Below are positions 14,512 through 63,844 of a stretch of 64,000 bases of DNA, piece by piece. The DNA lies in contig NW_026889808.1 of NCBI RefSeq assembly GCF_033153115.1, positions 496,001-560,000 of the forward strand, written 5' to 3'. How positions within the stretch are numbered: the stretch's first letter is position 1; every line of letters begins with the position of its first letter. The notes below the pieces were generated by a model that did not search any database, was not told where the DNA came from, and saw only the letters and a list, made by a program, of their open reading frames with translations. The stretch is from Saccostrea echinata (taxonomy: Eukaryota). Made by a program: the position numbers and the translations under genes.

Positions 14512-17500
14512 ATGTATTGGTATTCATTTTTAAATACATTTCTGGCGGCCTTGTTTTATATTTTTATGGCACATGGAAATGAAATGGGCAATGGTTGCAT
14601 ACCAGAGTGTAAAGTCACTAAGACCAATATAACTGACAACCATCTCCTCAGCCAAAATGATAAACCCCTGAAAACAGTTTCCATATCATTGTTCCTTGGA
14701 CTGAAAGAAAATAACTGTTCCATTAAGAATCAATGTCTTTTGAATAGCACAAGGATTTTGGAACACTACAACTTTAGTGATGATTCTATTGTAAGTGTTT
14801 TTAACTTTCAGTGCTACACGCCTCTTATAATACAAATAACACCGTACACCGGTAGGCATAGGCCAAATATTATATCATATATCCAGGTGATAAAATGTCA
14901 GATGACAGAAGAATCTTTTTACATTCTCGGAAGCATGGTTCTTCCTTTTCACGTGCTTTTGATGGACACAAATCTTCCAACGATTGAAAGTAAAGGCACG
15001 AACAAATCAATGTGCAACCTGATGAAACAAGTGACAACACTATGGATATTTAATAAAGCTTCACAAGATAATGTGACAGACTTGGAAGACATTATAAACA
15101 TGTTTCAGTGCAATCATGACTTTCCAAATATGAAAGATTTGACCATTCAGAACGTTAAGATCAATACGTCTTTATTCGATTTCAGTGCGAAATTTCCTAA
15201 TCTAGTTTCTCTGGAACTTTCACTGACGGGACTTCAAAATCCAATTCAATTTCCTTGGAGTGATTCATCTCCTTTACTCAGTTATAATCTTTCATCTTCG
15301 GAATATCTGCTCAATCACTATGCTAAATCCTTACACATAACTGTAGAAAAGCATCATTTTCGTAGATATCTTAATCTGAACATGAATAATATTTCTATCT
15401 TACAGAACTACGAATTCGAAGGCAGGCTACAAGCACTGAAATTCTCAGGAAACGGACTAACGGAATTACCAGAGAATTTGTTTCAGAAATTGAAACAGAT
15501 TGAACACATTGATATAAGTTTAAATAGCATAAAAAGACTCCCTTCCTCTTTATTTCGAGAACTTCCTTTGCTCAAGCATCTTGATTGCCACTCTAATAAT
15601 TTGACAGAGATACAGATGGATCTATTTATTGATAACAAGGAATTAATCTATATGGACTTTTCACGTAACAGAATCGAGAGAATCCATAAAGATGTTTTCA
15701 GATTCATGGAGAATTTGCAAGAGTTGCATTTACAAAATAATAATATAGTTTCATTGGAAAATGTGGAGTGGCCTTTCTATTCGACGAAACTGGAATTTTT
15801 ATATTTCGACGAAAATCCATTGATCCACCTACCAGACGTAGTATTCTACCTTAGAGCCATCAAACTGGCCAGCTTTAAATATACGCAAATTCATTTCACA
15901 AACTTTACTAAATATGTGAATAATCTAGAATATAGTTCGATAGCCGAACAATTAGTCAAAGGCTCCGTGCCCAAAAATGATCTTAGTTATAATGTTATCG
16001 TTAAAAATCCAAACTTGCTTCTCGATAATATCCTCGATAGAAACCGAAAAATTGATCTTACTGGAAGTAAAATAGACAACTTAAATATCGAATTTTTCGG
16101 AGAGCAACGAGAACTTAAGGAAAGATCAGGTAGAATGAAATTAAAGTTACTCTTGATTTTAAAGTACTTTGAAATCATTTTAGAAGGAACTCATCTTCGA
16201 TGCGATTGTGGTATTACACACCTTAGTAGACTTGTGGCAATCCTCGAGAAGGATGGTTTGCTTGATGGAAAGGAGTATTTCTTCAACGATTGGAAATGCT
16301 CCACTCCCCAAGAATTTAAAGGGAAAAACATGCTGAAAATACAAGAATCAGATACGTATTGTGAGAGAACTATTACAAACTGCCCATCAAATTGTACTTG
16401 TTATTCCAGATCGATAACACACATAACGATTGTTGATTGTCGAAATCGACTATATCGGGACTTGCCCAAAATTTTACCGGAGGGTATTCTCGACCTCTGG
16501 TTTCAGCATAATAACATATCTACGATCAATGAAGAAAATTTACAGTATCTACCGAATATAAGACAACTTCTTTTATCCGAAAATCAGTTAACAAGAATTA
16601 GTGATGGAGCCATAAGTAAAATGACTCTTCTTAGTACGTTGTATGTGGATTCCAATTACCTTGTTTCTCTTCCTAGGGCACTCAGAAATATGCGGCTGAT
16701 GTCCATGAATTTCATAAACAATCCATTAAAATGTGACTGTCATACGAAATGGATAAAACACTGGGTTCTAAAGAATAGCGATGTTGTGGAACGTGTGTCA
16801 GACATCACATGTAATGTAGATGATGAAGCAGAAAAGGGTAACTTTTTGATCCGAATTCCAGATGAAGATTTCGTTTGTTTAGAAGACTTTGACTCAGTTA
16901 AGCATGTAGTCATACCCAGCGTCACCAGTTCCTTGATACTGGTACTTCTCATCATTTTGCTGTGTTTGATGTATGTTTATAGGCTAGAAGTAAAGGTTTT
17001 ACTGTATATTTACTTTGGAATCCATCCATTTGATAAAGATGATAAGGATGGAAAAGAAATCATTGATGTTTTGGTTCTTCATGCCCCGGATACGACGGAA
17101 TGGGTGATGGAAAATGTTGTGAAGTACTTGGAATTTCAGAAAGATTATTACGTTGTGTGTGAAATGATGAGAGATTTTGTCGCTGGTTTTACCTATATGG
17201 AGAACATTGCAAGCATTGTAAAACATAGTAAGCGAATGCTGATAATTCTATCCCCCGAATTTATCGAAGACGACTTGTTAAAAGTAGCTTGGAATGAAGC
17301 GCAAGAAAAGATCAAAGAACTACGAACCAACTACGCCATTGTTGTGTGTCATGACGTAGTCTTGAAACAAGTAATGATAAAAGATATGCAGAGATATATT
17401 AAAAGAGGGCGATATATCGACGCAAATCAGGCGCTATTTCATGAAAAACTACTATACTCCATGCCACAGTATGAGGACCAGCATGGTAGAGTTAAAAGTC

Positions 17501-18243
17501 TTCCCGATATTAAAGACTTTATTCAGGCAACATACGGGGAAGAGGGATTCAATAATGACATGTACAAAAGACATGCTTTTGTTTCCTATTCCGATAGTGA
17601 AATGCCCTATATTATGAATGAATTAAGACCAACATTAGAAAATAATGGATATTTCTTATGCCTGCCTGATCGGGACTTTGTACCAGGTGCTTCAAAAGAG
17701 GAAAACATTTTAAAGGCTATTGACAGTTCCTTACATACATTGTTCATTCTTTCTGGTAACCACCTCGAAGACGAGTGGTCAGTTTTTACATTCAGAATAG
17801 CCAGTGAAAAGTCTTTACGTGTCCGAAGTAATCATTTAATTGTTATCATTGGTGAGGATGCTGACCTAGAAACCATGGACGAGGAAGTTCGATTTTACAT
17901 CAAAACTCACGTGACTCTCAGAGTGAACGAGAAGTGGTTTATTAAGAAGTTATTAAACTCTTTACCAGAAGTTGACGCTCCTATCCTTGATGTGAATGAC
18001 CAAGAGGATGATGATATTAAACACAATGTGCGCCATAAGCATCAGAAAGAAAGGGAGCCCAGGAGGGTGGTGGCTGAAATCAATCATTGTGCATATGACG
18101 ATAATGGGATTGTTAATGGTATGGGAAATGGGTATGCAGGAAACAGGACGGTTAAGTTTATTAAGAACGATAATCATGCTTATGTCAATGATGAAGACTA
18201 TCAAATTGAATTTACAGACATTTCCTTAGACGATGATGTTTAG
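14512..18243 (+). CDS. Toll-like receptor (multi-cysteine-cluster type) with two tandem TIR domains, paralog A, 1243 aa
   Basis: Good Kozak context (gcagccATG); signal peptide MYWYSFLNTFLAALFYIFMAHG; LxxLxLxxN repeats; LRRCT (CDC...WKC) + LRRNT (CPSNCTC...VDC) + 3-4 LRRs + second LRRCT (NPLKCDC); TM ~16906-16980; TIR1 ~17056-17466 (CEMMRDFVAG); TIR2 ~17560-17967 (HAFVSYS, CLPDRDFVPG); acidic tail. Single uninterrupted ORF. Confidence 0.95.
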   Translation: MYWYSFLNTFLAALFYIFMAHGNEMGNGCIPECKVTKTNITDNHLLSQNDKPLKTVSISLFLGLKENNCSIKNQCLLNSTRILEHYNFSDDSIVSVFNFQCYTPLIIQITPYTGRHRPNIISYIQVIKCQMTEESFYILGSMVLPFHVLLMDTNLPTIESKGTNKSMCNLMKQVTTLWIFNKASQDNVTDLEDIINMFQCNHDFPNMKDLTIQNVKINTSLFDFSAKFPNLVSLELSLTGLQNPIQFPWSDSSPLLSYNLSSSEYLLNHYAKSLHITVEKHHFRRYLNLNMNNISILQNYEFEGRLQALKFSGNGLTELPENLFQKLKQIEHIDISLNSIKRLPSSLFRELPLLKHLDCHSNNLTEIQMDLFIDNKELIYMDFSRNRIERIHKDVFRFMENLQELHLQNNNIVSLENVEWPFYSTKLEFLYFDENPLIHLPDVVFYLRAIKLASFKYTQIHFTNFTKYVNNLEYSSIAEQLVKGSVPKNDLSYNVIVKNPNLLLDNILDRNRKIDLTGSKIDNLNIEFFGEQRELKERSGRMKLKLLLILKYFEIILEGTHLRCDCGITHLSRLVAILEKDGLLDGKEYFFNDWKCSTPQEFKGKNMLKIQESDTYCERTITNCPSNCTCYSRSITHITIVDCRNRLYRDLPKILPEGILDLWFQHNNISTINEENLQYLPNIRQLLLSENQLTRISDGAISKMTLLSTLYVDSNYLVSLPRALRNMRLMSMNFINNPLKCDCHTKWIKHWVLKNSDVVERVSDITCNVDDEAEKGNFLIRIPDEDFVCLEDFDSVKHVVIPSVTSSLILVLLIILLCLMYVYRLEVKVLLYIYFGIHPFDKDDKDGKEIIDVLVLHAPDTTEWVMENVVKYLEFQKDYYVVCEMMRDFVAGFTYMENIASIVKHSKRMLIILSPEFIEDDLLKVAWNEAQEKIKELRTNYAIVVCHDVVLKQVMIKDMQRYIKRGRYIDANQALFHEKLLYSMPQYEDQHGRVKSLPDIKDFIQATYGEEGFNNDMYKRHAFVSYSDSEMPYIMNELRPTLENNGYFLCLPDRDFVPGASKEENILKAIDSSLHTLFILSGNHLEDEWSVFTFRIASEKSLRVRSNHLIVIIGEDADLETMDEEVRFYIKTHVTLRVNEKWFIKKLLNSLPEVDAPILDVNDQEDDDIKHNVRHKHQKEREPRRVVAEINHCAYDDNGIVNGMGNGYAGNRTVKFIKNDNHAYVNDEDYQIEFTDISLDDDV

Positions 18244-20081
18244 TTCATACTTTATATCTTTTCATTGCTCACCAAAAAAGTTTTACGTTATTACACGTAT
18301 GAATGAAATACTCATTTGTTCTGGGTGCTCAGATTTTGATTTTTTAAATGTATATTCTGAAAGTCAAAGGAGAGTGAAAATTACTTAAATTATTAAATAT
18401 ATTTTCTTTCTGTTTTCTCTTTTAGTTTAGGTAAATATACGAAACTCAATTTTTGTCGGCATAACAACAAATGTTAATTCCATATGTACAATTTGGAGTC
18501 AATAACTTACGAAAGGAAAATGAGATTAATCGTCGTAAGCAAAATGTTACCTGGCTTCAAGATCCTGAAGCAATTTAAAGCTTAAATCCGAATTTCATGT
18601 ATTGTCATAACATTTCATTATAGAAAGCACATAAAATTTAAAAAGTTTTAAAAATCATTTTTCTTTCATGTTGTTAATTTTAATTTTGACTGTCAGTTTA
18701 TAATATTCTTTTTTACGAATGTCTGGAATTTTAACTTAAGTCTAAGACTGCATCATTGTCCCAAAGCCGGAGGCTAGTGAAGGGCTTCCTGCATGGACAA
18801 AATATGGCTCTCAATGCAATTGAGAAATGAGGTTCTTTTGGAGTTGAACTATGTTCAATTTCCCTTGGCTTTCACTCACGAGCAAAACCACTGCGCGGGC
18901 AGTAAAGGTTATATAGCACCCTTCAGTGTGAGCCACTTTACTAAAAAGTGTACCATTACAATCAAAGGCAACTATATGCCTCCTCCAAAGAAATAACAAC
19001 ACAAAATCTTTACTTTTAATTTGACATGTTTTAAAAAAATAAAATAAAATTAGTTAAAACGAATAAATATACAAATTTATAAATTCCTACTTAATGAAAA
19101 AGGTGACGATAGCGAATTGGACAGTGATCGATCTTCTGTGAACAGGACATAAAACACGCCTCCCCCCCCCCATCCCCTGGAAATTCCTTAAATAATTGAC
19201 AATTCAACTCCCAGGAATACATTCTATACTGTTATTTTAACTTGCGTACGCCTACAATGACACTGGATTTAGATTTAATTCCTCGAAAGAGCGCAATTTT
19301 CTTTTTGATGTGCCGAAGGCTGGGAGAAATATGGAAATATTCTTTGGTTAATTTCAAAGATACTGCCATGATATTCATCATTTATTTAACTGTTCGATGG
19401 ATTCGATGGATATTTAGAAGTTTTAAAGATTGCAGATTGATGGCTGAAATTTTCATATATAATATTGAATCTTTTATATTGAAATTTCAAAAGAGTAAAA
19501 GAGTTACCCAGAGTAAAATAGTGTTACTCGGTTTATTTTTCCACGATAGAGTACTTGGGAATGTGACATATCAAAATCTTCACCAGTAATCACCATCAAA
19601 AAGTTTTTGCTACTTCATAATTTTGAAAGGGAAAATGCACCTGGCAAGATTTGAAGCATATTTGGAAGTAGGAATCTGTATCTAACTGATCCCTACACAT
19701 TTTATCAAGTTATCAAGGAAGAGAGTTAGTAAGCGTTAGGTGACGCTATACACTTATTATGGAATAGTCAGAATGATTTATAGAATGTATCCTTGTGGTA
19801 TAATCCATGCAGGTTAATATTAGATGTATAGGGGCTTTGAATGATTCTGCAAAACTATTAAAACCTTATCACTCATCCAGAAAATAAGGGCACTTGCAAT
19901 ACAATTTAATACAATCCCTATTTGATAAGGAATGACAAAGCATGATAAATAATGCTGGAAATGTATCTGTGTCAAATGCAGAAATTGGAAAAAATTGCAA
20001 CTTTAAGGACATATGACACACAAAAAATGGATGCCTGGAATGATATATATATATATATATATATATTTTACTTCGGTTCTA

Positions 20082-21913: not shown

Positions 21914-22097
21914 TGTTTAAATTGTAGAAAAGTAGTATGTTTTGGTGTTACTGACTTGAGAAAACGGATGATTTTAAATTTTCTAAAGTTTTTTGGAGGC
22001 TTTGAGAATCCACATTTGATTTACACCACTTCTAGAATATGTTGTAGTACAGTACGTCTGAACTTTCCCCTTTACAGCAGTTAATATTTTTGTAAGA

Positions 22098-37294: not shown

Positions 37295-37319
37295 ATCTTT
37301 ATTTTTATTTTCGTACAGG
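37295..37319 (+). promoter_or_regulatory. Probable splice acceptor of the coding exon of paralog B
   Basis: tctttatttttattttcgtacAG|G; exon starts 37319, 156 nt before the ATG. Confidence 0.6.
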
Positions 37320-37474
37320 TGATTTCCAAGAAATTTGGAATAAACTAGAGTGTTAAACCAGACTCTTTAAGGACAAAAGTAAGGAAGAAATAATGCAAAA
37401 AGAATTTTTATTTCTGATTAGAAGACATTAAAATCGAAGACCTTTATTTCAATAGACGATGATTTTTAGTGAAA

Positions 37475-40400
37475 ATGATTTGGCATCCACTTTTCCCTGT
37501 CATAATGTCCTTCGTTACCATCGTTTCTAGCATTAAGGCTACAGGAACAGGAAGTGACGAACCGGAAGTAAAATCTAAAGCTAATTACTGTAACATTTCT
37601 GAATGTCACCTTAGAATAGAAGAAATAAGTACATCAAGGTTGCGTAATCGTCTGGATTCTCCACTTCAATTAAGCGGGAAAAGGGTCACTATAGACAACA
37701 AAAACAACTGTACAATAAATTCAACTTTACTACGAGAGAATTTGGACATGAAAATTGACCTCAGTATTGGATTAATTTCCGTCAAATGTTCCAACAACAT
37801 CAGCATTCATTTTTCATCAGACGGAACATTATTTCACACCGATATGTTTCTACATCTCCAAGTTTTAACCTGCAGTATCTCTATGGATTCCCTTTTTGTG
37901 TTAAATAGAAACTTTGGAAATATTTATTCATTGGAACTTGACAGGACACCTTTACCTAGTGACCAAACCTCTTGCAATTTCTCTTATCTTACGAAAGATG
38001 TATGTAAAACATGGGAATCTGTGCATTCAATAAAGCTTTCAGCATCTACATCAGAAAGTCCACATAATAATATTTCTAGGGTTTTTAACTGCCCAGGAAA
38101 CCTAACTGCAGTTAGGGAATTGATACTAAGAAATTGGCAAATTGATGCACATGGAGCATCTTTTCTCAAGGAGAAGTTTCCGTTTTTACAAAATTTAGAG
38201 ATTTCTTTTTCAATGATGACGATTCCTCCTCAATTTCCATGGGATGAGACAAATCGAACGTTTCCTCATAATTTTTCAGAATCTGCCTATACAATATTTC
38301 ACTATTTACATAGTTATCATGTTGTTCTTCCAAGACAATTCTACAAACGTACTATCAATCTGAATTCCAATTCCATAACGGATCTTTCCGACTTTCGCTT
38401 TTTTGGATACATTCAACTATTAGATCTGTCATACAATAAACTTCAGGTTTTAAATGAAAGCTCATTTAATGGACTGCAAGGCGTTCAACATTTAAATCTG
38501 AGGAATAACAAGCTGAAAACAATTTCAAGTCAATCATGGAGAAGTCTGAAATTGTTACGTCACTTGAACCTGCACTCTAATGACATAACAGAAATACAGC
38601 CTGATATGTTTGACAATAACCCGGAAATTGAATATTTAGATCTTTCAAACAACAATATCAATAGAATAGAAGAATATTCCTTTACAAATCTATTCAAGTT
38701 AAAAGAAATTCGCTTAGAATCCAACGCTATAGTAAATCTACCAAGCAATTTTCTTCCTTCCAATTCACTTAATTTTCAATATTTATATTTAAATCAAAAT
38801 CCTTTAATAGATTTTCCTTTGTCAATTGTTTACTTTCGATCCTTAGAGAAAGTAAGTCTCCGACACACAAATATTGACCTACATGAATTTAAAGATAATG
38901 AGCTGCTACTGACTATTAACTACTACGCTATTAGAACTAGTGTAGCAAAATGGTCGGAAGAAAATATCAATGGAAATAAGGAAAAAAGTCCAGAACGACT
39001 TCGACAGATTGATTTATCGGGATCTCGAGTGGAAAATATAGAGCTAGACGTGTTTAAGAGTGGAAGAGATACTAACAAATTCAAACACCTTATTTGGAGA
39101 TTATCTGTTATTCTGAAACATTTTGAATTTGTTCTTGATGGAATCAGTTTACAGTGTGATTGTAGAATAAATCAATTCAACAGGTTTGTACAGGAAGCCA
39201 TAAATAGAAATCTTTTTAGTGGCAGAGAGTATTTCTTTAATGATTGGAAATGTTCTTTTCCTTTGGAATTTAAAGACAAACCACTGGTCAGTATAAAGGA
39301 ATCGAATACCTACTGCGTCACCATCACCCCACACTGTCCACGAAATTGCACGTGTCTGAAGCGATCAGTTAGCGGTATCATCATTGTCGATTGTCGTCAG
39401 CGTGGTTATTTCTCTCTTCCCGAGCAACTCCCTGATGGAATTCTAGACATCTGGTTTCAGTACAATAATATATCAGTAATTCGAAATATTGGCTATTTGA
39501 ACCGTATTCGCCGGCTCTATCTTTCCCAAAATCAAATTGTGGAAATTGAGAACGATGCCATTGAGAGCATGCACAACATCCGTCATCTTCATGTCGACTC
39601 CAACAATCTTGTTGTTATGCCTACCAAAATCCAGGAAAGGGATATGAAGTATATAAATATTGATAACAATCCTTTTAAGTGCGATTGCAATGCTCTTTGG
39701 ATGAAGCACTGGTTGCTGTCAAATTCAGAATCATTTTCTGACGTCACGGGTATAACGTGCAACATCGATGATCAAAATGAAAAAGGGACAAAGTTTGTAA
39801 ACATTCCAGATTCCGACTTTATTTGCTTGGATGAATACAATACACTTAAGGATTTGATAATTCCAATCTCAGTCAGCACTTTATCTATAATCCTGATTAT
39901 AATTGGCATATGCTTTATCCACCTATTCAGCTTTGAAGTAAAAGTTCTTATGTTTATGTATTTTGGGATCCACCCCTTTGACTTAGACGAAGACGAATCG
40001 AGAGAAGCTGTTGATGTCCTTGTTGTCCATGCTCCTGGATTAACGAATTGGGTGATGGAGAACATTGTGGGTCCATTAGAAGCACAGAAAGCCCAGTATA
40101 TTGTATGCGAAATGATGAGAGATTTCATCCCTGGATATTCCATTCAAGATAATTTTGAAAGCATTGTAAAAAATAGCAAGCGAATGATTTTGGTACTTTC
40201 CCCCGAAATTCTCGCTGACCAGTTGCTAAAATTAGTTTGGAGTGAGGCACAAGAAAAAATAAAAGAATTGCGATCGAATTATGTGGTAATGGTATACCAT
40301 AATCTTAATGCGAACGATATCATGAACGAGGATATGTTGCGTTATATAAATCACAGTAAAACCATGACATCAAATGATCGACTTTTGCGTCAGAAACTTC

Positions 40401-41644
40401 TATATTGTATGCCTGTCATATTTGAGAATACTGATGAGGAGGATCAACGTCTGGAAATTCGACATTGTGTGAAAAAGATGTACGGTGACGAAATAGGTAA
40501 ACAAGTTCTGTTTGAACGCCATGTTTTTATTTCATACTCCAACGCCGAGATAAGATGTTTGTTGGATGAAATAAAACCGCTGCTAGAGGACAAGGGTTAT
40601 ACCTTATGTCTTCCTGACAGAGATTTCATACCGGGTGCACCACAGGAGGAGAATATCCTTAAAGCGATAGACACCTGTCTTCACACAATATTTATTCTGT
40701 CTGGGAATCACCTGCAAGATGAGTGGTCCATTTTTACATTCAGAACTGCATGGGAAAAATCACTCAGAAACAAGAGTAATTATCTGATAGTAATTCTAAG
40801 TGAAGATGTAGAGCTCGATGATATGGATGATGAAATCAAGTACCATGTGAAGACGCACGTTACGCTACGAATTGGCGATGAGTGGTTTGCGACGAAACTT
40901 TTAAACTCACTAGTTGATGTTAATACTTATGCACGATGTGTTGTAGATGGAAACAACCGAGAAGACTTCTGTTGTTTAGATTACGATGAACAGAGTATTT
41001 CCGATAGCATGTTGTTCGACAATCATTGTGATATTGCAGCCAGGGATAGTAGAATTGAAAACGTCGAACATGGGATACAAATTGAAGAAGAAAAACGTTG
41101 GCGTAGGGTTGTGTCTGTTGATATTCATAAAGAATTTGAAGTCGAAAATATGCAAGGGATCGAATACAATGACAATGAAGATTTTATAAATGTTTATGAA
41201 ATTGAAGCGGTTGAATACAATGCTACTGAAAGTAATTGCAATGGGCAAGAAAACAGTTTTTGTGAAGTGCAGGAAAAATGTGAATGTAGATCAATCATTG
41301 AGCACTCTGACGGTGATGAATTTGAAGATTTAAGATTTTTGCATTTTAACAATAATACAGAGAGAGTAATTAGCTTTAATATTAAAGAGGTGTTTCATCT
41401 TAATGTTACAGAAGATGAAGAAAACCTGTCAGATATCAAAAACGAAAATGTTTGTTCTAGTGTCAGTTCTGTTAGAGATTTCGACCAAAGCAGGAATTTC
41501 CGTAGGTTAAACATCCACTCGGAAACGGATGAGAGCAATATACATGTTACTCCTCTATCCAATCAGCTGAAAACTGACTATGACGTCAGCGATTGTGATG
41601 TAAGTGACAGTGACAATAATACTGACTCCGAAAGTAATAATTAA
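37475..41644 (+). CDS. Toll-like receptor with two tandem TIR domains, paralog B, ~1389 aa
   Basis: The ORF track starts at a GTG (37469); the first ATG is 37475 and is followed by a signal peptide (MIWHPLFPVIMSFVTIVSSIKA). Same architecture as paralog A; TM ~39858-39930; TIR1 ~40004-40414 (RDFIPG); TIR2 ~40511-40912 (HVFISYS, CLPDRDFIPG); ~240-aa acidic tail. Confidence 0.95.
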   Translation: MIWHPLFPVIMSFVTIVSSIKATGTGSDEPEVKSKANYCNISECHLRIEEISTSRLRNRLDSPLQLSGKRVTIDNKNNCTINSTLLRENLDMKIDLSIGLISVKCSNNISIHFSSDGTLFHTDMFLHLQVLTCSISMDSLFVLNRNFGNIYSLELDRTPLPSDQTSCNFSYLTKDVCKTWESVHSIKLSASTSESPHNNISRVFNCPGNLTAVRELILRNWQIDAHGASFLKEKFPFLQNLEISFSMMTIPPQFPWDETNRTFPHNFSESAYTIFHYLHSYHVVLPRQFYKRTINLNSNSITDLSDFRFFGYIQLLDLSYNKLQVLNESSFNGLQGVQHLNLRNNKLKTISSQSWRSLKLLRHLNLHSNDITEIQPDMFDNNPEIEYLDLSNNNINRIEEYSFTNLFKLKEIRLESNAIVNLPSNFLPSNSLNFQYLYLNQNPLIDFPLSIVYFRSLEKVSLRHTNIDLHEFKDNELLLTINYYAIRTSVAKWSEENINGNKEKSPERLRQIDLSGSRVENIELDVFKSGRDTNKFKHLIWRLSVILKHFEFVLDGISLQCDCRINQFNRFVQEAINRNLFSGREYFFNDWKCSFPLEFKDKPLVSIKESNTYCVTITPHCPRNCTCLKRSVSGIIIVDCRQRGYFSLPEQLPDGILDIWFQYNNISVIRNIGYLNRIRRLYLSQNQIVEIENDAIESMHNIRHLHVDSNNLVVMPTKIQERDMKYINIDNNPFKCDCNALWMKHWLLSNSESFSDVTGITCNIDDQNEKGTKFVNIPDSDFICLDEYNTLKDLIIPISVSTLSIILIIIGICFIHLFSFEVKVLMFMYFGIHPFDLDEDESREAVDVLVVHAPGLTNWVMENIVGPLEAQKAQYIVCEMMRDFIPGYSIQDNFESIVKNSKRMILVLSPEILADQLLKLVWSEAQEKIKELRSNYVVMVYHNLNANDIMNEDMLRYINHSKTMTSNDRLLRQKLLYCMPVIFENTDEEDQRLEIRHCVKKMYGDEIGKQVLFERHVFISYSNAEIRCLLDEIKPLLEDKGYTLCLPDRDFIPGAPQEENILKAIDTCLHTIFILSGNHLQDEWSIFTFRTAWEKSLRNKSNYLIVILSEDVELDDMDDEIKYHVKTHVTLRIGDEWFATKLLNSLVDVNTYARCVVDGNNREDFCCLDYDEQSISDSMLFDNHCDIAARDSRIENVEHGIQIEEEKRWRRVVSVDIHKEFEVENMQGIEYNDNEDFINVYEIEAVEYNATESNCNGQENSFCEVQEKCECRSIIEHSDGDEFEDLRFLHFNNNTERVISFNIKEVFHLNVTEDEENLSDIKNENVCSSVSSVRDFDQSRNFRRLNIHSETDESNIHVTPLSNQLKTDYDVSDCDVSDSDNNTDSESNN

Positions 41645-46045: not shown

Positions 46046-48121
46046 GGTATAGGTTTGAAGAAGAAGAGTGAAAATTATCTGTTATCTATATTTATCTATT
46101 TATAGATTTATTTATATATTATATATTTATAAATTATCTATATTTGTCTATTTTCTTTGAATCTTGGCATACAAAAATCGTTTTCGAACATTACATTTAT
46201 ATGAGTTATATTAAAAGTTTTACCTAGAAAAAAAAATCAATAGAAAAAAAGTGAATATAACGAATTGAGATCAATGTAATAAATCCAGTAAACAAGAGAA
46301 ATTATGAACAGGGCAAAAACATGGAGCCCTAGAAACACCAGAGGTTGGATCAGGTGTCTAGGTGGAGTAAACCTCCTCAGTTGACCCGTCATACCCGCTG
46401 TGAGCCTTATATATTGATAAGGTGGTAGACGTGGTACTCCATATGTATCGTAAACAGGACAAAAGCACGGAACCCTGGAAACACCAGCGCTAGGATCATG
46501 TGCTTAGAAAGAGTAAGTATCTCCTGTCAACCAGTAACACTTGCTGTGTGGTATTTTAAATGGTTGTGAAAATATCAATTTTTCAATTCAAACGAACATA
46601 ATATCCTTGCTTTTCATAACTTTACCTATAGTTACATCAATAAATGATATTGAACATGTAATTAACTTCATTTAATAGATAAACATTCTTTGTGCAGAGA
46701 AGCAAATCACATTTTAGAAAAGAATTTAAGAAAAAATAAGTGTATACGTTTAATTTCCTTAAAATACAAATGAATGTAGTCGGGAGAATTTGACTTCTAT
46801 TACAGAAATGGTACTATTTGCAAAAGTAACTTTTGAATAATGAATTAAATAGTACATGTACTAATTTCCACGATCATATTCACAGACTATCATGTCTTTT
46901 TTAAAACAAAATTAAACGGTATAAATTCTGTTTTTAATTGTGTACCTTTTCCGTTTTTCCCGATCATGACAAGGAACACACCGTGGATATGACCGGTCGG
47001 CAGCGGATGCAAACTCCTCCATGATATCTGATCCCATCCCATGTTTTAGAGGTCCATGTTTGCTCTGCTCCTGAATTATATTGTTTATTAAATGGACTCT
47101 TGAGCTTGAATACTGTTCGTTATCTCCATATTTCACTCCCTCTAAATCTACGCTTGGAAACATCAGTCATCGTTTTTAAAAAGAAACTCAAAACACATAT
47201 GTTTAAAACTGCTTTTATTCTATAAATCTTTCCAATCGACGTTTTGGTCTCATTGCTATTATGTATATAAAACACTGAAGGATTTTACATGTTTTAATAT
47301 TTAATATTGTAAATCGTTTTAAAATCGTATTATTACATTATACATGTATTATATTTTTATGCCTTAAGTTAAACTTCCATGTAAAGCGCTTCAGATTTAA
47401 AAAAAAATATCAAGCACAATAAAAATGTGCAAAAATAATAAATAAATAAAAAGCAATGTAAATTTAAAGTGTTTTTTTAGGGGGAAGGGGTATATCTTAT
47501 ATGTTTAATAAATTATCAGATCATTAAGTTAAGCTCTACACACCTGATATACAAGCTAGAAATGATTCCAATGTAGACATTGCCTATAACATGAAGATAC
47601 CAAAACAGTATTGAAGATCAAATCCCAAATAACTCTTATGAATTGAGAGCTGTGCCAAATTTAGTCCCCTGGAAAACTCATAAGTGGGATCAGGTGCCAT
47701 GGAGGAGTAAGCATTCCTTGTTGTCCGGTCTCACGAGTCGAGACCCCTTTAATCTTGATCAGGTAATTTACCCAGCACTATGTATTGAAAATGTCAATCA
47801 GTCAAACTACATGTAACGACTGCTTGTTTGTTTGTGTGTAGGATGAATTTTTGTCCAATTTTGAGATGAAAGAGAAAAATCTTGAAACACTGATGCCAAG
47901 TCCGGTTAGGTTTAATAGTTGTTAAGTATTCATCTACAATGGCACCAAAGTGCAAAAGTTCTGTATTTCTATAACTGCAATGTGAAGCGCACATACAAAG
48001 TATAAAATATATGGAACTAGCAGTATGCACCCTCTATCAAACACAGTGACACATATAACCTATAGGTTAAAGCTTTACTGTTTGTGTGGCATTTTTTCAA
48101 GCGAAATTTTTAAAATCATAT

Positions 48122-48288
48122 ATGTAAGAAATAAAGTATCATTTTGAAACATCTATCGGGATATAAATACAGGTTGGTCACGAGATCAAATTCCACAAAG
48201 CCCGAAGGGCTTTATGTTAAATTTGATCTCGTACCAACCCGTATTTATATCCGATAGATGTTTTAAAATGATACCTTATTACTTATAT
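48122..48288. repeat. ~167-bp imperfect palindrome with GAA loop; probable terminus of a non-autonomous (possibly Crypton-like) element
   Basis: aaagccc-gaa-gggcttt centre (48197-48213) with ~80-bp paired arms. Confidence 0.7.
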
Positions 48289-51200
48289 TTACATTTGTGA
48301 CTTATTCATATTATTTATTAGCCTGATTATAACCTTTAATGCGTGAAATGTTTTATTTTTTCAAACTCAACGGCACAAGTTTGATCTATTGATTGCGCGT
48401 CGACCCTTTATGACGTCACTGAGAAATTACGTCGAACGTTTATGACGCGAGGAACCCGTGTTTATACGGATATAGATACACATTGCTTTTAATAGTGTTA
48501 TATAAAGGAAAACATTTGCAAATGTAAATATATACTGATATTTACATAATTCTAACAAAACCAAATGATCCTTGAACAACCACACAGTGCCTAGAAAAAC
48601 GTACGTAGTAATTGTTGAGAGCCTTTGATAATATATTGTAAACAGGCGATAAATAAGAGAAATTAAAGAAAAATATCCATGCATTATTTTAATCTGACCA
48701 GTCTCAATATCTTATTGGTTACTTCTCATTTCAAAATTTATTCTAAAATATAATATAATGACATATATTAAAACATATAAAAGCACAGACAAACATGAAT
48801 GAAAACATAACCTCTTTTCGCTGGTGGTTGTATTCAACTTCCCTTGGCAAGATAATAGGTAAAAAATTCTGTCTGGATGAATAATTTATCAATACTAGTA
48901 AGCGTTTTCACTTTAAGTACCTCAAATATTTTATAATTAACTGGTTGAAATAACAAACAGTGATCAATCTCATAAAACTGGTATATAATACGAATCGAAA
49001 ACAATGCAAAAGCTGGTAGCCCTGGAAAACCAGAGGTTGGGTCAGGTGCCTAAGAGCAGTAAGCGTCCCTAGATTTTAAAAGTACATTGTTGTTTGTCAT
49101 TGTCGAGAAACTTTATGAATGTATTCCATCATTCGATAATTTCAGTCCACATAAGAAACACAAAATAATATGTTGAACAGGTTAATATGTTTATTTGTGA
49201 ACGTCCCATTTGCTCAACCGAAAAATTCGTTATCTTTTATCTTATGAAATATACTGAACAAGGATAAGACAACAACGTGCAAATGAAAATGCTCAGAAAG
49301 TTCTTTTTTCCTTGTAAATTTGATTTCGATCAGCATATTACAGAAATCTAATTTATCGCATTAATTTTGAGAGCTTATTACCCCGAAATTTTGTTTAAAT
49401 GCCTTTTTAAAAAAATGATTTGTTAAGAAAACGGAAGCAAAAAAAAATATTTCTGGATCAGGAAACTCCTCACATGATCATCTTTGATTTAACCAAAAAT
49501 ATTTTCATTAGTACAAGTAGACACGTACTGAAATTAATTTTTTTCCCTTTAAATCTCTTAATTGCTGTTTTTGTCATTTATATCGTTTAATGTGTTTTGG
49601 AGGGGTTCATTATCAACATTAAATACTACATATAGATATAAAACGTTTATTATAATGGCTAAAGCGATCTAAGACATATATCGGTATCTACGATGTTAAC
49701 ATGACTTACAAGACCAGGCAGATGTGAATATTTAGTGTAAACCACAAGAATGAGTGTCAATCTCGTGATTGGCCAAGTTTGAGGAAAATTCAATGTAACC
49801 ACAAGAAGTATGAATGGAAAAATTATCAATTTTAAATAGATCAAGTTTCGGTTTGTCACATGGACAAATTCTGTTTCTAAGTTCTTCAATCTAAGTTCGT
49901 CATGCTTGACAATTTCATACAAGAACATGTGACATAATTACTTGGTGTTTGCGACACGTACACACCTCAATGGTGGTTGACTTCTCAAAATTTGTTAGTC
50001 TAAATCTTTTATCAGACATATACATATCTTTTTTAAAAAATATTTAACTTGAAATGGTAATATAAGGTTTTAGAATGTTTTAATACAAAAGGAATAAAGA
50101 AAAGAAAAACCGACAAAATGGTCAATGCCCTGAAACCAAATAAAAAAAATAACAAAATTACAATTATAACTTTTTGCTTAGTTTTTACTATTTACCTGTT
50201 AAATAAGAGTGAAATGACGTATCAAACATTTAGATCGATACCAATTCTTCATATCGCCTTCCTATTTTGTCCTACACCGACTGTTCAAATAAGTGATTTG
50301 TCGTTTAACTATGGATGACCAATACACTTTTTTTTTTAAATTACAAATAATGAATATGATTTCATTCACTATTCTTTGGAATTATTACTTCCTTGATATT
50401 AGTGTGTGGATAGGATAATCAGCATTCTGATACAGTGTTTTATTTAAACAAGGAGGTCATTCTAATAGATGTTATTGCCACCAGTTTTTATTCTAAGTGT
50501 AGGCTGACAGACCATTACAAGCAGAAAGAGAAAATCTTGACGTTAGAAATAATGTAATCAATGACGTAGATAGGTGATTTATCACCGAATGGATGATGTT
50601 TAACAATTATTCTCATGTAGTGAAATTCTTTTACGACCTTATAATAAAACATCTATAAAATAGGTCGCCTTGATGAGCTTAGGTCTAAATAATGGTATAC
50701 ATATCCAATTATTTATTGAAGAAGACTATGCTAATTATATTCAGGGCAAAAGATAGCTTTTTATTTGTTGACACTTTGATTGTGACGTCACTTTAGCAAA
50801 ATAAGTAAATGGTAGTAAATATCAGAAAGATTGCATCGAATAGGATATCATGGGATGAAAGCAACGAATCAAATTTTAGTCTTTTTCATCAGAATGGGGG
50901 TTTTGTGTCGAATGTTTACTATCCAATATATTTTGTCATTTGTAAGAAACTGCACATATAAATAAAGAGTTTAACCCAAATTACCAATATCTAGTCCATT
51001 CCTTCAACACACTGTGGTAAGTTTGTCATTCAAAGCTTACACTACTGCAATTCAGTATAAAGACTTCTGCAATTGATAAAGCTCATAGTTTAAACAATAT
51101 GCATATATACAGGCATTTAACGTATACATCTTTGATCGCTTTCCAAGGACATCTCGGCAATTACAAATTACTTTTATTGTGCTGAATTCTGCCATAAAGA

Positions 51201-51364
51201 ATTTTGAGGTGACAATATATGAATTATTCATACAATGTGGTGACAATATTTTGTAACACACAAATTTACTCTTGTACAGGTGTGCGTTTTGTTTACATTG
51301 CAACTGGTGAAATTTATATTTTATATTATTTTTTTTAAATCGCTGTAAATCAATTTAGAGTAGT

Positions 51365-51367
<3 letters not shown>

Positions 51368-51445
<78 letters not shown>
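51368..51445. repeat. (TA)n microsatellite
   Basis: Direct reading; others at ~52513-52575 and ~20044-20066. Confidence 0.95.
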
Positions 51446-51448
<3 letters not shown>

Positions 51449-52507: not shown

Positions 52508-52578
<71 letters not shown>

Positions 52579-54167
52579 AATAAAATACATCTCAAAGTAC
52601 AATCGACTTAGCCGTTTCAGAAATAGCTAACGCAAGTAATTTTTATCAAATTTTTACACTTCTATGAATATAGGTCACCGAACATGGTGTCTAGCAGATA
52701 TCGTTTAAAAGTCGCCTCTTCTCATTAACAGGCGTCTTTAAGATGAGCTGAGTTGTCATATTTGATTTCCATGCATTGTCTTATTCTTATTTCACCTACG
52801 CTGTTTAATATTCTTTGTTTTCTCTTTTGTTTTTATCAAACATTTGACAAAAACCTAATTAATTATATCAACATGTCAATTTTACTATGTTTCAAAAAAG
52901 AATTTCACATCTAAATGTTCATATCTTCTATTATTATCTAAAGAAAACACGCATATGCTCTTCCCTTGGCCTACATTCTGTAAAGCACAGTGCATCATGT
53001 CCTACCAAATTTCCGCATAGTATGACATAGAAGACATTATAATTAATTTTCTTAAGAGATTTAATTTTTTGTTTAAAATGAAAAATGAAATTGGGAGAAA
53101 ATTCACGCCTCCACCAAACTCTACAGTTTGTGGATTTCCCTTCTATTACTAAATAGGTAAGTGAAAAGACATCTCAACATTTTCTTGTTTCGCATTTAAA
53201 CTTCAATATTGACTTGATTTCGATTTTCGCCAAGGTTTGTTACCTTAAACTATCACTAGTTATATTTTTCATTCTAGGGCAAAGAGAATTTATCAGTTTT
53301 AGAAAATGAAAACAGAGTTTATAAAAGTAAAATAAGTATATATTTTTTAAAGCACTAATACTTTAAATAAACAATGGATTCTTTAATGCAGTTGAGCAAT
53401 CATGCTTGCAAAAGGATGAACCTCTTAGGTTTTTACTGTCCTTCTGTGCAATTTTTGTGAATAGAATTGAGGATTAAATGTCTACAAAAGCTTAAAATTT
53501 ATTAAATCGAGATCTAATTGAATGAAATATGGAAATAACGAACAGTTATCAAGCTCAAAAGTTCATCGAAACCATTTTCGCATGAAAAAAAGATCCGTTC
53601 TTGAATTTTCAGAAATCACTGTTAATTTCTATCTTCGAGATCAAACATCTTAGTTTTCTGATTTCAATTCTAAACACTAGTGTGTCCAAAAAGTAAACCT
53701 CCGTTAAATCTTGAAATAAGTGCGAATATTTTGTGAAGGTCAGGATAATGTCGGGTTGCATTCATCTTCAAGGTCAATGATAAAATTAAAAGTATCGTCT
53801 ATTATGACTTTTTACTTAACTGGGCATGTGACAGAACTAGTAACTTTTTAAAAAAAATTGATAACAATATTTTAAAATTTCGTAATAAAGGTTAGGATTT
53901 GAATGAAGTATATTAATAATTATTAAATACAAGAAAAATTATTAAACATAAGTTGACCCATGATTCGTTTTTACTGGTCATAAATCACTATCTACAATGC
54001 TCTTGATGGATGATCAAGACATAGCCTTATCGACATACGTGAACCAACAATCGCCCTTTTTACGATGTAATATATCATTCATGAATTCATTGAATCTCCA
54101 ATCGGACCAGTTTAACATATACATCTTAACCAAGTTTTAACAGTTAATATTTACTAAATATGTACAT

Positions 54168-54184
54168 AATTATTCTCTTACAGG
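54168..54184 (+). promoter_or_regulatory. Probable splice acceptor of the coding exon of paralog C
   Basis: tattctcttacAG|G; exon starts 54184, 267 nt before the ATG. Candidate donor AG|GTAAGT at 53157. Confidence 0.55.
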
Positions 54185-54450
54185 AAGCAACAGAAAAGAT
54201 TTCACCACTTGACTTGCTGTTCGGGCGCTGATAGGTCCACCTGAACATGTGCTTTACAATATAACCAACCATATCAAAATTTCAAGCAGAACCTAGAAGT
54301 GCGATCGACAAGTCGAAAAGTTGTTAATTTCTACTGAATACTCGAAAAATAACTTTCTTGCCAAGCACTAAATCTTATTGTGAACTCTTGCTATTTCTTA
54401 CGTTTGCCTGCAGCTGACAAGAAGTACGGAAAAATTTTGGTTTTGATAAA

Positions 54451-56544
54451 ATGGATTTCCTCAATATGCATTTAAACTCTAATTTTTTTCTGCATCTCTG
54501 CATTTTGACTGTTTATGTTTCTACCGCTAACATCGTGACAAAGTGTGGCATCCCAGAATGCATTTCAGCCAAAGTCTCTTCTCCTTCCTATAATGTTATG
54601 AAAATGAACAACAAGCCCCTGAAGACCAATGTAACAGGGTTTTATCTTGTCCCTCCAGTATCAAACGAATGCTACCTCAGGACCTCAGATATAATGGAAA
54701 GTTATCACTTCGATGGACACCAAATGGTCGGTGTGTTGGTTTTACGGTGTTCCTCCAGAGCTATAATTCATCTTATACCTGATGTAAGACCAAAATATTC
54801 AAATGTGTTATTTCAGATTCAGATAGATAAATGTCTTCTCACTACGGACAGTTTAAACGCCATCAGTCAGAGGGTAAAGATCAACCATTTATCATTTATT
54901 GACACGTATCCCCTGGTGAGCCACTCATACTGTGATGGGTCTAGCGTAGTCAACGCAGACTGTGGATTCTGGAGTTCTGCCACAGCTATCGGCATTATTC
55001 TTCCGCAGAACCTAAATTCCATTAATATTTCAAGACTTTTCTGGTGCAACAGAACGTTTCCTAACATTAAACAATTACTTTTTCGAAGATGGGACTTAAA
55101 TAATCAAGATCTTCTCTACCTCAAAACAAGATTTCCAAACTTACAAGATTTGCAAATATCGGATTCCTCTCTGAAAGTACCGCCTTCATTTCCTTGGAAT
55201 AATGAAACCTTCAGATTTAACAATAATATGTCGTATTCAGAGACTGGATTTTACGACTCAGCATCGGTCTTCAACATTGAAATCGAACCAAACATTTGGA
55301 AGCGTGTGCTAAACTTGAACTCAAATAACATACAGGTTTTGACAAATTTTATGTTTGATGGGCATCTAGACATGTTAAAGCTTTCAAGGAATGGACTTAT
55401 GTCTGTAGGACCATTCACTTTCTCCAGAATAAAAGGTCTTCAGCATCTCGACCTAAGCGAGAATTTATTATCAGACATTCCTGCCAATATTTTCCGCGGC
55501 CTCACACGCCTCAGGCACATAAATCTTCATGCCAATCTCCTGTCCATTATTCCTGATGAGATGTTTTATGATAATACAGAGCTTGTCTACCTTGACCTTT
55601 CAAACAACAGCATAACAATAATTGGGTCAAATGCTTTCTCAAGATTACATCATCTAGAAGACTTACGACTTGAATATAACCGTATTGTCACAATCAGTTA
55701 CTCCATGTTTCCAGCATATTCTGTATCTTTTCAGTCTTTGACACTTGATGGTAATCCAATGAAAGAATTACCTGAGGCAATTTTCTATTTCAAAACTTTG
55801 TATGATGTTAGTCTCCGGTATACTAATATCGACTTTAAGAACTTTACGCAAATGTTACTTGATTTAGATTTTTCTCTCCTGGCAGAAGGAAACGCACAAG
55901 GTCAGACAACAACAGAAGATGAATTGCTAACGAGATCTCCTCGGAAATTGAAAAGGATTGACCTCACCGGCAGTAAAATAAATAATCTTCATCTTAAGTA
56001 TTTTGGGACTGATATCTCTACTAGAAATTCTGCTATACTCAGAATGAAACTCCTTATGCTACTGAAATATTTTCATCTGATTCTTACCGACAATCCAATA
56101 AACTGTGATTGTAAAATTAACCATCTAACTAGATTTATAAAATATGCCCTAGCTAAAGGTTTTCTACGAGGAAACGAATATTTCTTTAACGACTGGAAGT
56201 GTTCTAATCCAAAAGAACTAAGATATATACCGGTAACGCAAGTTCCAGAAGCAGAAACCTACTGTCCCAAAGACATAGCTAATTGCCCGGTTGAATGCTC
56301 ATGCTACGAACGGTCTATCAGCGGCGTCACTATTGTTGATTGTCGAAATGTCGGACTGAGAGAACTTCCTAGATCACTTCCAGAAGGAATTTTAGACTTG
56401 TGGTTTCAGAACAACAACATTTCAACTCTTACACGAGAGGAATATCTCCCCAGAACTCGACAACTTTTACTAACTGGAAATAAAAATATTAGAATTAATA
56501 CAAATTTACTTCAAAATCTTCATATCTTAAAAATTACCACATAA
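54451..56544 (+). CDS. Ectodomain-only TLR paralog C (signal peptide + LRRs + LRRCT/LRRNT; no TM, no TIR), 697 aa; secreted protein or truncated pseudogene
   Basis: Collinear with A/B (CGIPEC, FPW, LNLNSNNI, IDLTGS, EYFFNDWKCS, LPEGILDLWFQ). It stops within the second LRR block, and no TM/TIR-coding sequence is recognisable downstream in the window. AATAAA at 56823-56828. Confidence 0.8.
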   Translation: MDFLNMHLNSNFFLHLCILTVYVSTANIVTKCGIPECISAKVSSPSYNVMKMNNKPLKTNVTGFYLVPPVSNECYLRTSDIMESYHFDGHQMVGVLVLRCSSRAIIHLIPDVRPKYSNVLFQIQIDKCLLTTDSLNAISQRVKINHLSFIDTYPLVSHSYCDGSSVVNADCGFWSSATAIGIILPQNLNSINISRLFWCNRTFPNIKQLLFRRWDLNNQDLLYLKTRFPNLQDLQISDSSLKVPPSFPWNNETFRFNNNMSYSETGFYDSASVFNIEIEPNIWKRVLNLNSNNIQVLTNFMFDGHLDMLKLSRNGLMSVGPFTFSRIKGLQHLDLSENLLSDIPANIFRGLTRLRHINLHANLLSIIPDEMFYDNTELVYLDLSNNSITIIGSNAFSRLHHLEDLRLEYNRIVTISYSMFPAYSVSFQSLTLDGNPMKELPEAIFYFKTLYDVSLRYTNIDFKNFTQMLLDLDFSLLAEGNAQGQTTTEDELLTRSPRKLKRIDLTGSKINNLHLKYFGTDISTRNSAILRMKLLMLLKYFHLILTDNPINCDCKINHLTRFIKYALAKGFLRGNEYFFNDWKCSNPKELRYIPVTQVPEAETYCPKDIANCPVECSCYERSISGVTIVDCRNVGLRELPRSLPEGILDLWFQNNNISTLTREEYLPRTRQLLLTGNKNIRINTNLLQNLHILKITT

Positions 56545-61589: not shown

Positions 61590-61721
61590 NNNNNNNNNNN
61601 NNNNNNNNNNNNNNNNNNNNNNNNNNNNNNNNNNNNNNNNNNNNNNNNNNNNNNNNNNNNNNNNNNNNNNNNNNNNNNNNNNNNNNNNNNNNNNNNNNNN
61701 NNNNNNNNNNNNNNNNNNNNN
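61590..61721. other. Assembly gap (132 N)
   Basis: Run of N. Confidence 1.

Positions 61722-63810: not shown

Positions 63811-63844
<34 letters not shown>

Follow-up and report, generated by a model that had tools for sequence, protein, structure and literature searches.

Layout of the cluster

The window, that is, the whole 64,000-nucleotide stretch of Saccostrea echinata DNA that we analysed, contains three intronless paralogs in its open reading frame listing, all on the + strand, which are referred to here as A, B and C.

14512..18243, + strand: paralog A, a twin-TIR Toll-like receptor, intronless, 1243 aa (ORF; Pfam)
37469..41644, + strand: paralog B, a twin-TIR Toll-like receptor, intronless, 1391 aa (ORF; Pfam)
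54451..56544, + strand: paralog C, ectodomain-only, 697 aa (ORF; Pfam; hydropathy)

The listed start of the B frame is a GTG codon, and its first ATG lies at 37475. When the window was searched by tblastn with each of the three proteins, only these three loci were matched. A and B are 40% identical over 1153 aa, and C shares 35% of its residues with A and 34% with B over ~700 aa. Pfam and hydropathy bore out the preliminary description of this set as two twin-TIR Toll-like receptors (TLRs) plus one paralog with neither a transmembrane (TM) segment nor a TIR. The motifs that it had quoted for A, B and C were also present, apart from two small slips: A has CIPEC, which is one residue short of the quoted pattern, and B has INLNSNSI instead of LNLN.N.I.

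The locus had been described as one of three genes, but the full cluster consists of five same-strand tandem genes in the order D-E-A-B-C. D and E are two further twin-TIR genes upstream of the window, which holds the 3′ part of the cluster, and C lies 12.8 kb downstream of B. A second copy of the cluster is present in the same assembly, on contig C25; there C has the identical shortened frame and is not full-length. None of the refuting conditions named in the preliminary description was borne out. In other oysters, adjacent locus and accession numbers on a single contig hint at linkage; judging from these numbers alone, the linkage of C to the cluster seems to have been kept in Crassostrea virginica and Ostrea edulis.

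Twin-TIR receptors A and B

The genes of the window are a cluster of the twin-TIR (SPP-2TIR) Toll-like receptor family. As judged by eye and from hydropathy, A and B have a signal peptide, and their Toll-type ectodomains carry several cysteine clusters. Pfam matched LRR_8, TIR and TIR_2 in A. The features of the membrane-spanning and cytoplasmic regions of both receptors are the following.

16921..16977, + strand: TM helix of A, aa 804-822 (Kyte-Doolittle)
17005..17040, + strand: conserved juxtamembrane motif of A, YIYxGxHPFDxD (family alignment)
17068..17421, + strand: TIR1 of A, membrane-proximal, atypical (Pfam TIR alone, 33.3 bits)
17578..17994, + strand: TIR2 of A, distal, canonical (Pfam TIR alone, 45.6 bits)
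18010..18240, + strand: acidic C-terminal tail of A (net charge −6 over 77 aa)
39854..39910, + strand: TM helix of B, near aa 796 (single hydropathy peak, 2.68)
40019..40360, + strand: TIR1 of B (Pfam TIR alone, 32.4 bits)
40523..40942, + strand: TIR2 of B (Pfam TIR alone, 47.8 bits; TIR_2, 49.8 bits)
40967..41641, + strand: long acidic tail of B (net charge −37 over 225 aa; 24% D+E)

The TM helix of A is its sole 19-residue window with a Kyte-Doolittle mean >1.8 (score 2.82), and none of the 52 bivalve twin-TIR TLRs in the alignment deviates at the H, P, F and D of the juxtamembrane motif. The presence of two TIRs per receptor, already proposed, was confirmed by cutting the cytoplasmic part of A and B in two and scoring the halves separately, since each half passed the Pfam gathering cut-off (21.3) alone. 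The family alignment has no consensus in the tail region of A, and this tail is not conserved.

The cytoplasmic regions are 40-81% identical to those of twin-TIR TLRs from Crassostrea, Ostrea, Pinctada, Pecten, Mytilus, unionids and Mya. At E ≤ 1e-15 we recovered 57 homologous proteins, most of which cover at least ~78% of the query and hence both TIRs; they include proteins from Pinctada, Pecten, Mytilus, Sinanodonta, Potamilus and Mya, and the family extends over Ostreida, Pectinida, Mytilida, Unionida and Myida. Orthologs of A were found in C. virginica (LOC111136264) and in Logan assemblies, and one of B in O. edulis (XP_048757268). Twin-TIR clades were recovered in the gene tree, and the conserved CxC...C clusters and CPxxCxC LRRNT2 in the alignments indicate an internal LRRCT-LRRNT pair. 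According to the papers that cite it (PMC5845394, PMC6836662), Gerdol 2017 named the twin-TIR class; Saco 2023 termed it SPP-2TIR and described it as conserved across molluscs (PMC10279657), and a functional paper on the twin-TIR HcToll-2 of Hyriopsis cumingii is cited as Ren 2014 in PMC6672746. Like the other bivalve and mollusc members, A and B combine an ectodomain of several cysteine clusters with a single TM and two tandem TIRs. Nothing essential is different in them; they add further members from one more oyster species, and their long acidic tails are specific to the lineage and show no conservation. On sequence grounds, A and B are ordinary members of a described class and not new.

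The two TIRs of these receptors are not equivalent. In A they are 31% identical (E 1e-14), and box 1 reads IDxVIVHS in TIR1 versus HAFxSYSD in TIR2, where the BB loop is RDFIPG. Among 52 aligned family members, the BB-loop proline is present in TIR2 of 44 versus TIR1 of only 6, being replaced in TIR1 of the other 46, while conservation across bivalves is equal (0.62 for TIR1 and 0.64 for TIR2). The AF2 model of the twin-TIR region (pLDDT 84.4, pTM 0.84) contains two TIR-type alpha/beta units; its best fold matches were the TIRs of TLR1, TLR10, TLR6 and TLR2, and each PDB TIR match covers ~130-155 of the 343 residues. The pTM suggests a fixed arrangement of TIR1 relative to TIR2 in the model. 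The earlier idea of a pre-built TIR dimer finds weak support in this arrangement, and the uneven BB-loop proline shows that the two TIRs would not be equivalent partners. Because this proline is kept in TIR2, TIR2 may be the adaptor-recruiting face, and TIR1 could be its fixed structural or regulatory partner, in keeping with the high pTM. What these receptors add beyond the known class is the systematic inequality of the TIRs and a confident whole-model prediction of the two-TIR region, and little otherwise.

Paralog C, an ectodomain-only gene conserved in oysters

C has a signal-peptide-like N-terminus, an N-terminal LRR region, LRRCT1, LRRNT2 and approximately two further LRRs, and it ends within the second LRR block without a C-terminal LRRCT cap. 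Pfam matched LRR families and LRRNT only, with no TIR, and no TM peak appeared in the hydropathy profile. All C orthologs start with a hydrophobic stretch and then carry a conserved A-N-I motif, as judged by eye and from hydropathy. GPI anchoring is unlikely because the short C-terminal tail has little hydrophobicity and is hydrophilic in C. virginica. The best fold matches of the AF2 model of C (pLDDT 88.7) were Drosophila Toll-Spaetzle (4LXR) and Aedes Toll5A-Spz1C (7B1B/C/D).

Downstream of the gene, a tblastn search of 56301-64000 for a TM/TIR-like coding remnant gave only noise at E values up to 50, and no TM/TIR coding sequence was found within 7.4 kb of C or further along contig C59. 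At the local base composition, an open frame of 697 codons would occur by chance with a probability of ~1e-24. C is probably transcribed, as suggested by contigs from the public run X1, which is taken as RNA by guess only.

54661..56586, + strand: stretch of C covered by X1 contigs, transcript-like (four contigs, 0-1 mismatches)

At C, these contigs cover the ORF only, at 3-8x, and the unique flanks have depth 0. They are colinear across the stop codon without a joint; none of them reaches the first 210 nt of the ORF.

Orthologs of C, with 677-700 aa, were identified in Saccostrea cucullata, O. edulis, Magallana angulata and C. virginica. The five aligned representatives have a common end point, the C. 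virginica protein being 7 residues longer, and the open frames of the five species are 60-90% identical. The two assembly copies of C show 5 differences (4 non-synonymous and 1 synonymous), too few for a dN/dS reading. C is a conserved gene in its own right, and alternative splicing, allelic variation or a break in the assembly does not account for it. When Saccostrea was compared with other genera, ectodomain identity was 60-72% for C versus 42-60% for A, B and D/E; by this measure the ectodomain of C is the slowest-evolving of the cluster. It is 33-36% identical to the ectodomains of A, B, D and E over ~690 columns.

The C clade received a support of 100/100 in the gene tree, and its branching agrees with accepted oyster relationships. 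The tree places C as sister to D/E at 86/92, and this pair is the likeliest closest relative of C. In an AU test, a position of C outside all sampled twin-TIR TLRs was not rejected (p 0.145). Relative to the receptors, C is without the final LRRs, LRRCT2, the TM and the two TIRs; because the AU test left the alternative standing, derivation by loss is argued here from the best tree and the taxonomic distribution. Given this distribution, C was probably truncated already in the ancestor of the oyster family Ostreidae.

The TLR repertoires of bivalves are larger than any others known. TLR surveys count only TIR-bearing proteins (PMC8609888, PMC10279657), so that TIR-less derivatives are filtered out by design; a search of the literature for oyster TLR paralogs that are TIR-less, soluble or LRR-only, and for the accessions of the C orthologs, returned nothing specific. 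C is such a TIR-less derivative of the twin-TIR subfamily, and a real, conserved and slowly evolving gene across oysters.

Possible roles of paralog C

The reading that we favour, with reasonable though not high confidence, joins these observations: a D-E-A-B-C twin-TIR cluster with unequal TIRs, in which C would be secreted and would set the gain of Toll-type signalling. C is probably a secreted regulator. It would bind an extracellular partner which, by analogy with Toll ectodomains, could be a Spaetzle-like ligand or a receptor ectodomain, and its effect on Toll-type signalling would be either to dampen it, as a decoy, or to amplify it, as trout TLR5S does; a soluble amplifier or co-receptor is just as likely as a decoy. 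C need not bind the ligands of A or B, because their identity with it is 33-36% and few residues of the N-terminal region, which binds the ligand in Toll-Spaetzle, are common to C and the receptors. The N-terminal divergence also argues against simple mimicry of the receptors. More tentatively, C might be an obligate extracellular subunit of the oyster twin-TIR Toll system: a ligand trap or co-receptor that derives from a receptor, is secreted, occurs Ostreidae-wide and pairs with the receptors of its own cluster or with their Spaetzle-like ligand. The atypical TIR1 would be a partner built into the receptors that fixes the threshold at which the adaptor assembles. If true, this would give protostomes an equivalent of the TLR5S/TLR5M pair of fish. 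C is a concrete and testable candidate for a factor that controls Toll signalling from outside the cell in oysters of commercial importance.

The receptor/decoy module of the preliminary description is only partly supported, in that its two receptors and its ectodomain-only C are real. In the N-terminal region, C is 23-28% identical to A and B, whose divergence from one another is comparable, and the tree places C with D/E and not with A or B. Its higher conservation compared with the receptors would suit a separate ligand or partner for C, and trout TLR5S, the best-studied soluble TLR paralog, was reported to amplify and not to dampen (PMC7460618). For these reasons, we consider it unlikely that C is a dedicated decoy for A and B that sequesters their ligand and dampens their signalling, even though it has a Toll-type ectodomain fold, lies close to B on the same strand, seems to have maintained its linkage to the cluster in C. 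virginica and O. edulis, and has a precedent in soluble, TIR-less TLR relatives that alter signalling (PMC7460618). It is likewise improbable that C is a secreted LRR protein whose role (humoral PRR or opsonin, adhesion or developmental factor) is independent of the cluster receptors, adjacency being due to tandem duplication only. Such a role would agree with the 62 clade-specific invariant positions of C and with an N-terminal region that is conserved inside the clade and unlike that of the receptors; furthermore, scallop LRR-only proteins bind PAMPs directly (PMC5877582), and TLR tandem arrays persist without functional coupling (PMC10279657). However, the LRR-only PRRs known from molluscs are small and have 1-4 LRR domains (PMC5877582), whereas C keeps nearly the whole Toll ectodomain, LRRCT1 and LRRNT2 included, and its best fold matches are Toll receptors complexed with Spaetzle.

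We give very little credence to C being a non-functional truncated duplicate, i.e. a pseudogene fragment, or a gene-model artefact deprived of its downstream exons. The frame does stop inside the LRR block without an LRRCT cap, the evidence for its transcription is of low depth, and four of the five differences between its assembly copies are non-synonymous. Against this stand the 677-700-codon frames that end at a common point in five species (7 aa later in C. virginica) at 60-90% identity, the negligible chance of such an open frame, and a slower evolution than that of the signalling paralogs. TM/TIR coding sequence is absent from the 7.4 kb downstream and was not found further on C59, and one contig passes the stop without a joint.

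The preferred reading, in which C is secreted and sets signalling gain, was compared with known systems. Teleost TLR5S is reported to bind its ligand in the fluid phase and to act on the membrane receptor (PMC7460618). Like it, C is a separate gene for a TLR ectodomain without TM or TIR, not a splice form, and has been retained throughout a family of species. The TLR lineages are unrelated, C being of the Toll type with several cysteine clusters and TLR5 of the single-cluster type; in addition, C stops in the second LRR block without a C-terminal cap and is only ~35% identical to any membrane paralog. RP105 (CD180), a TIR-less TLR4 homolog, is also a TLR paralog without a signalling domain, and it regulates its TIR-bearing relative; RP105/MD-1 (3T6Q) came up when the C model was compared with known folds. 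In contrast to C, which has no TM, RP105 keeps a TM anchor and needs MD-1.

The ectodomains of Drosophila Toll and Aedes Toll5A (4LXR, 7B1B-D) are the best structural and among the best sequence matches of C. They share with it the LRR-LRRCT-LRRNT-LRR layout, at TM-scores of ~0.4 (low, as is usual for long solenoids) and 14-16% identity, but C is without the membrane-proximal end. The Hydra protein HyLRR is membrane-bound. This LRR protein without TIR pairs with the TIR-bearing HyTRR in immune recognition (PMC8609888), and both it and the scallop CfLRRops (PMC5877582) are TIR-less and LRR-built, as C is; the CfLRRops are small, whereas C appears to be derived from a full Toll-type ectodomain.

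Gene content of the locus and its second copy

The window has a GC content of 28-37% and contains only three open reading frames (ORFs) longer than 150 aa, all on the plus strand. Two of them encode twin-TIR Toll-like receptors (A and B), and the third encodes a paralog that consists of the ectodomain only (C). A tblastn search with the A, B and C proteins retrieved matches in the window at these three loci only, with 40% identity between A and B over 1153 aa, and 35% (A-C) and 34% (B-C) identity, each over about 700 aa. The motifs that the preliminary description attributed to the three paralogs are indeed present, apart from two trivial slips. On the same contig (NW_026889808.1, hereafter C59), 48-65 kb upstream of the window, we found a further pair of twin-TIR paralogs, D and E, which share 62.5% ectodomain identity. 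With these, the cluster comprises five genes in the order D-E-A-B-C.

Genes of the cluster (D and E in C59 coordinates; A, B and C in window coordinates)
D, C59:431474-434962, same strand as A-C: intact twin-TIR TLR paralog, 1237 aa
E, C59:444869-448468, same strand as A-C: intact twin-TIR TLR paralog, 1233 aa
A, 14512-18243, plus strand: ORF, 1243 aa
B, 37469-41644, plus strand: ORF listed from a GTG; first ATG at 37475
C, 54451-56544, plus strand: ORF, 697 aa

The window also includes two runs of N, at 9559-9741 (183 bases) and 61590-61721 (132 bases), and a repeat of ~415 bp at 48119-48535 with at least 40 other genomic matches that are 94-99% identical to it. A part of this repeat (~170 bp) also matches on the opposite strand, which indicates a MITE-like, inverted-repeat structure. 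Just downstream of C, the segments 57016-57149 and 57686-57800 are high-copy repeats: their summed contig depth ran from hundreds into the thousands in each of the three public runs, and loose ends were numerous.

The entire cluster is repeated on another contig of the assembly, C25 (25370388-25442823, minus strand). The cytoplasmic region of A (414 aa) is 100% identical between the two copies and C is 99% identical; the intergenic DNA is collinear and 99% identical, and the E-A spacer is shorter by about 50 kb on C25 than on C59. The C25 copy is probably an uncollapsed haplotig, or else what looks like a very recent duplication, and gene counts for this genome would include the cluster twice. 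C is clearly not full-length in this second copy, where the same 697-codon ORF is found with 5 nucleotide differences.

The tandem TIR domains of A and B

Pfam identified two TIR stretches in A and two in B. The cytoplasmic part was cut between the membrane-proximal (TIR1) and the distal (TIR2) domain, and the halves were scored separately against the Pfam curated cut-off of 21.3 bits. TIR1 alone scored 33.3 bits in A and 32.4 in B, and TIR2 alone 45.6 and 47.8, respectively, all above this value. Since each half passes the threshold by itself, the possibility of a single TIR hit per receptor is settled in favor of two, as had been proposed from the initial reading of the sequence. The two domains of A share 31% identity (E 1e-14). 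A hydrophobicity check revealed one transmembrane (TM) peak each in A and B, and none in C.

A search with the cytoplasmic region of A retrieved 57 proteins, the majority spanning both TIRs, from Saccostrea, Crassostrea, Ostrea, Pinctada, Pecten, Argopecten, Mizuhopecten, Mytilus, Sinanodonta, Potamilus and Mya. According to the passages in which Gerdol 2017 is cited (PMC5845394, PMC6836662), the Pacific oyster has 'Twin-TIR' Tolls at two loci, and an 'SPP-2TIR' subfamily has been described as conserved at the mollusc level, its two TIRs clustering together, that is, arising by internal duplication (PMC10279657). Given that the class is named in the literature, A and B are further members of an already-known type of receptor.

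Across 52 aligned bivalve sequences, TIR1 and TIR2 are equally conserved (mean top-residue frequency of 0.62 and 0.64), and the linker shows a value of 0.31. At the level of sequence, the two domains are systematically different: TIR2 has a canonical box 1 (HAFxSYSD) and BB loop (RDFIPG), with the proline present in 44 of the 52 sequences, whereas in TIR1 box 1 reads IDxVIVHS and 46 of the 52 have A, V, I or L in place of the BB-loop proline. This proline is required for signalling in vertebrate TLRs. An AlphaFold2 model of residues 830-1172 of A, built with the 52-sequence alignment, reached a pLDDT of 84.4 and a pTM of 0.84; for a two-domain chain, this pTM suggests that the relative placement of TIR1 and TIR2 is predicted with confidence. 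The Foldseek matches of this model (TLR1, TLR10, TLR6 and TLR2) span one TIR each, no solved chain covering both TIRs appeared among them, and they include 1FYX, the structure of the TLR2 P681H mutant. The twin-TIR unit would then be compact but asymmetric, with TIR2 possibly serving as the adaptor face and TIR1 as a built-in partner. The idea of a pre-built TIR dimer put forward in the preliminary description fits the predicted fixed two-domain unit, but not if equivalent domains are meant, given the difference in the BB-loop proline.

Right after the TM segment lies the motif YIYxGxHPFDxD (A, aa 832-843, window 17005-17040; B, at about 39962). Every one of the 52 twin-TIR TLRs in the bivalve alignment has its H, P, F and D residues, and the conservation of this nearly invariant juxtamembrane motif equals that of the TIR cores.

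Conservation, probable expression and likely origin of C

Orthologs of C were found in other oysters, under the RefSeq names 'protein toll-like', 'slit homolog 2 protein-like' or 'uncharacterized'.

Orthologs of C (length; identity to C)
S. cucullata XP_062575150: 696 aa; 90%
O. edulis XP_056006695: 677 aa (692-aa form in the public Logan assemblies); 72%
M. angulata XP_052703770: 692 aa; 64%; 501 sequences belong to its cluster at 90% identity
C. virginica LOC111136268 and LOC111136269: 698-700 aa; about 60%

The two C. virginica copies are near-identical. An alignment of five representatives (this C, S. cucullata, two Logan-derived forms and C. virginica) revealed a common stop inside the second LRR block, the C. 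virginica protein being 7 residues longer. Nothing similar to the lost 3' part was detected in the 7.4 kb downstream of C, nor was there a TIR-coding match on C59 beyond B. An open frame as long as C has a chance of ~1e-24 at this base composition. Candidate poly(A) signals lie at 56823 and 56973, a short way past the C stop codon.

Ectodomain identity between Saccostrea and other oysters (in the Magallana comparison, A, B and D/E are Logan clusters)
Ostrea: C 72%, B 50%, D/E 58-60%
Presumed Magallana: C 64%, A 49%, B 43%, D/E 51-54%
C. virginica: C 60-61%, A 46%

The difference between C and the others is widest in the first LRR block (72-80% versus 44-65%). Judged by these comparisons, no other ectodomain of the cluster is as well conserved as that of C. 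C is a conserved gene rather than a relic. Contigs of the public sequencing run X1 cover 54661-56586 at a depth of 3-8 with 0-1 mismatches, leaving the unique flanks uncovered, and one of them is colinear across the C stop codon, with no joint. The label of this run as RNA is a guess only; reads from DNA would be expected on the flanks to the same extent, so the coverage looks like transcript, and C is probably expressed.

Linkage of the C ortholog to the cluster in C. virginica and O. edulis is suggested by neighbouring locus or accession numbers: LOC111136264 is close in number to LOC111136268/9, and XP_056006694 directly precedes XP_056006695. Within each species, the contigs recorded for these proteins have identical lengths and are presumably one contig. 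The O. edulis RefSeq model XP_056006694.1 (2478 aa) resembles a fusion of two tandem twin-TIR TLRs.

In a maximum-likelihood tree on 694 ectodomain columns, the oyster sequences split into the clades A, B, D/E and C, all four supported at 100/100, apart from the twin-TIR TLRs of Pinctada, mussel, scallop and unionid at 96/89. D/E was the sister of C (86/92), so that on this tree the nearest kin of C appear to be D and E, not A or B. Inside the C clade, Magallana grouped with Crassostrea and Saccostrea with Ostrea, in agreement with accepted oyster relationships. The AU test did not reject a placement of C outside the twin-TIR TLRs altogether (p 0.145); hence, nesting of C within them is the best estimate, not proven. 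When 1.84 billion representatives were searched exhaustively, only one C-type cluster emerged at the 50% level; together with the oyster-only distribution, this suggests that a twin-TIR ancestor lost its TM and its two TIRs at the base of Ostreidae. The same search also returned other TIR-less relatives of this ectodomain (P0224, P0240, P0292, P0300 and P0287), which could be fragments or could have become TIR-less independently; four retain a TM and a short tail, and one 591-aa form stops after LRRCT1, without a TM.

Possible role of C

The AF2 model of C reached a pLDDT of 88.7 and a pTM of 0.84, and its last partial LRRs still showed a pLDDT of 69-83. The best fold matches were 4LXR (Drosophila Toll with Spaetzle), 7B1B-D (Aedes Toll5A with Spz1C) and C. 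elegans TOL-1. The N-terminus of C is hydrophobic and followed by a conserved A-N-I motif, and the C-terminus is not hydrophobic. We infer from the model and these features that C may be secreted and bind an extracellular partner. As regards function, we favor the reading that C modulates Toll-type signalling in soluble form, and give it even to slightly better than even chances. A strong alternative is that C is a secreted LRR protein acting independently of the receptors of the cluster. The narrower version of the modulator reading, in which C serves specifically as a decoy for A and B, seems less likely: the distance from C to the receptors is like that between receptors (23-32% versus 21-23% in the N-terminal region), which argues against mimicry of A or B, and simple mimicry is also at odds with the 62 clade-specific invariant positions of C and with its being more constrained than the receptors.

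Literature searches retrieved no papers describing C orthologs; the criteria used in TLR surveys themselves exclude proteins that lack a TIR (PMC8609888). For a soluble modulator, the closest precedent is teleost TLR5S, which in trout is reported to act as an amplifier of TLR5M signalling and in pompano may act as an antagonist (PMC7460618); by analogy, the effect of C could go in either direction. C belongs with the known soluble or TIR-less TLR paralogs, as an additional member.
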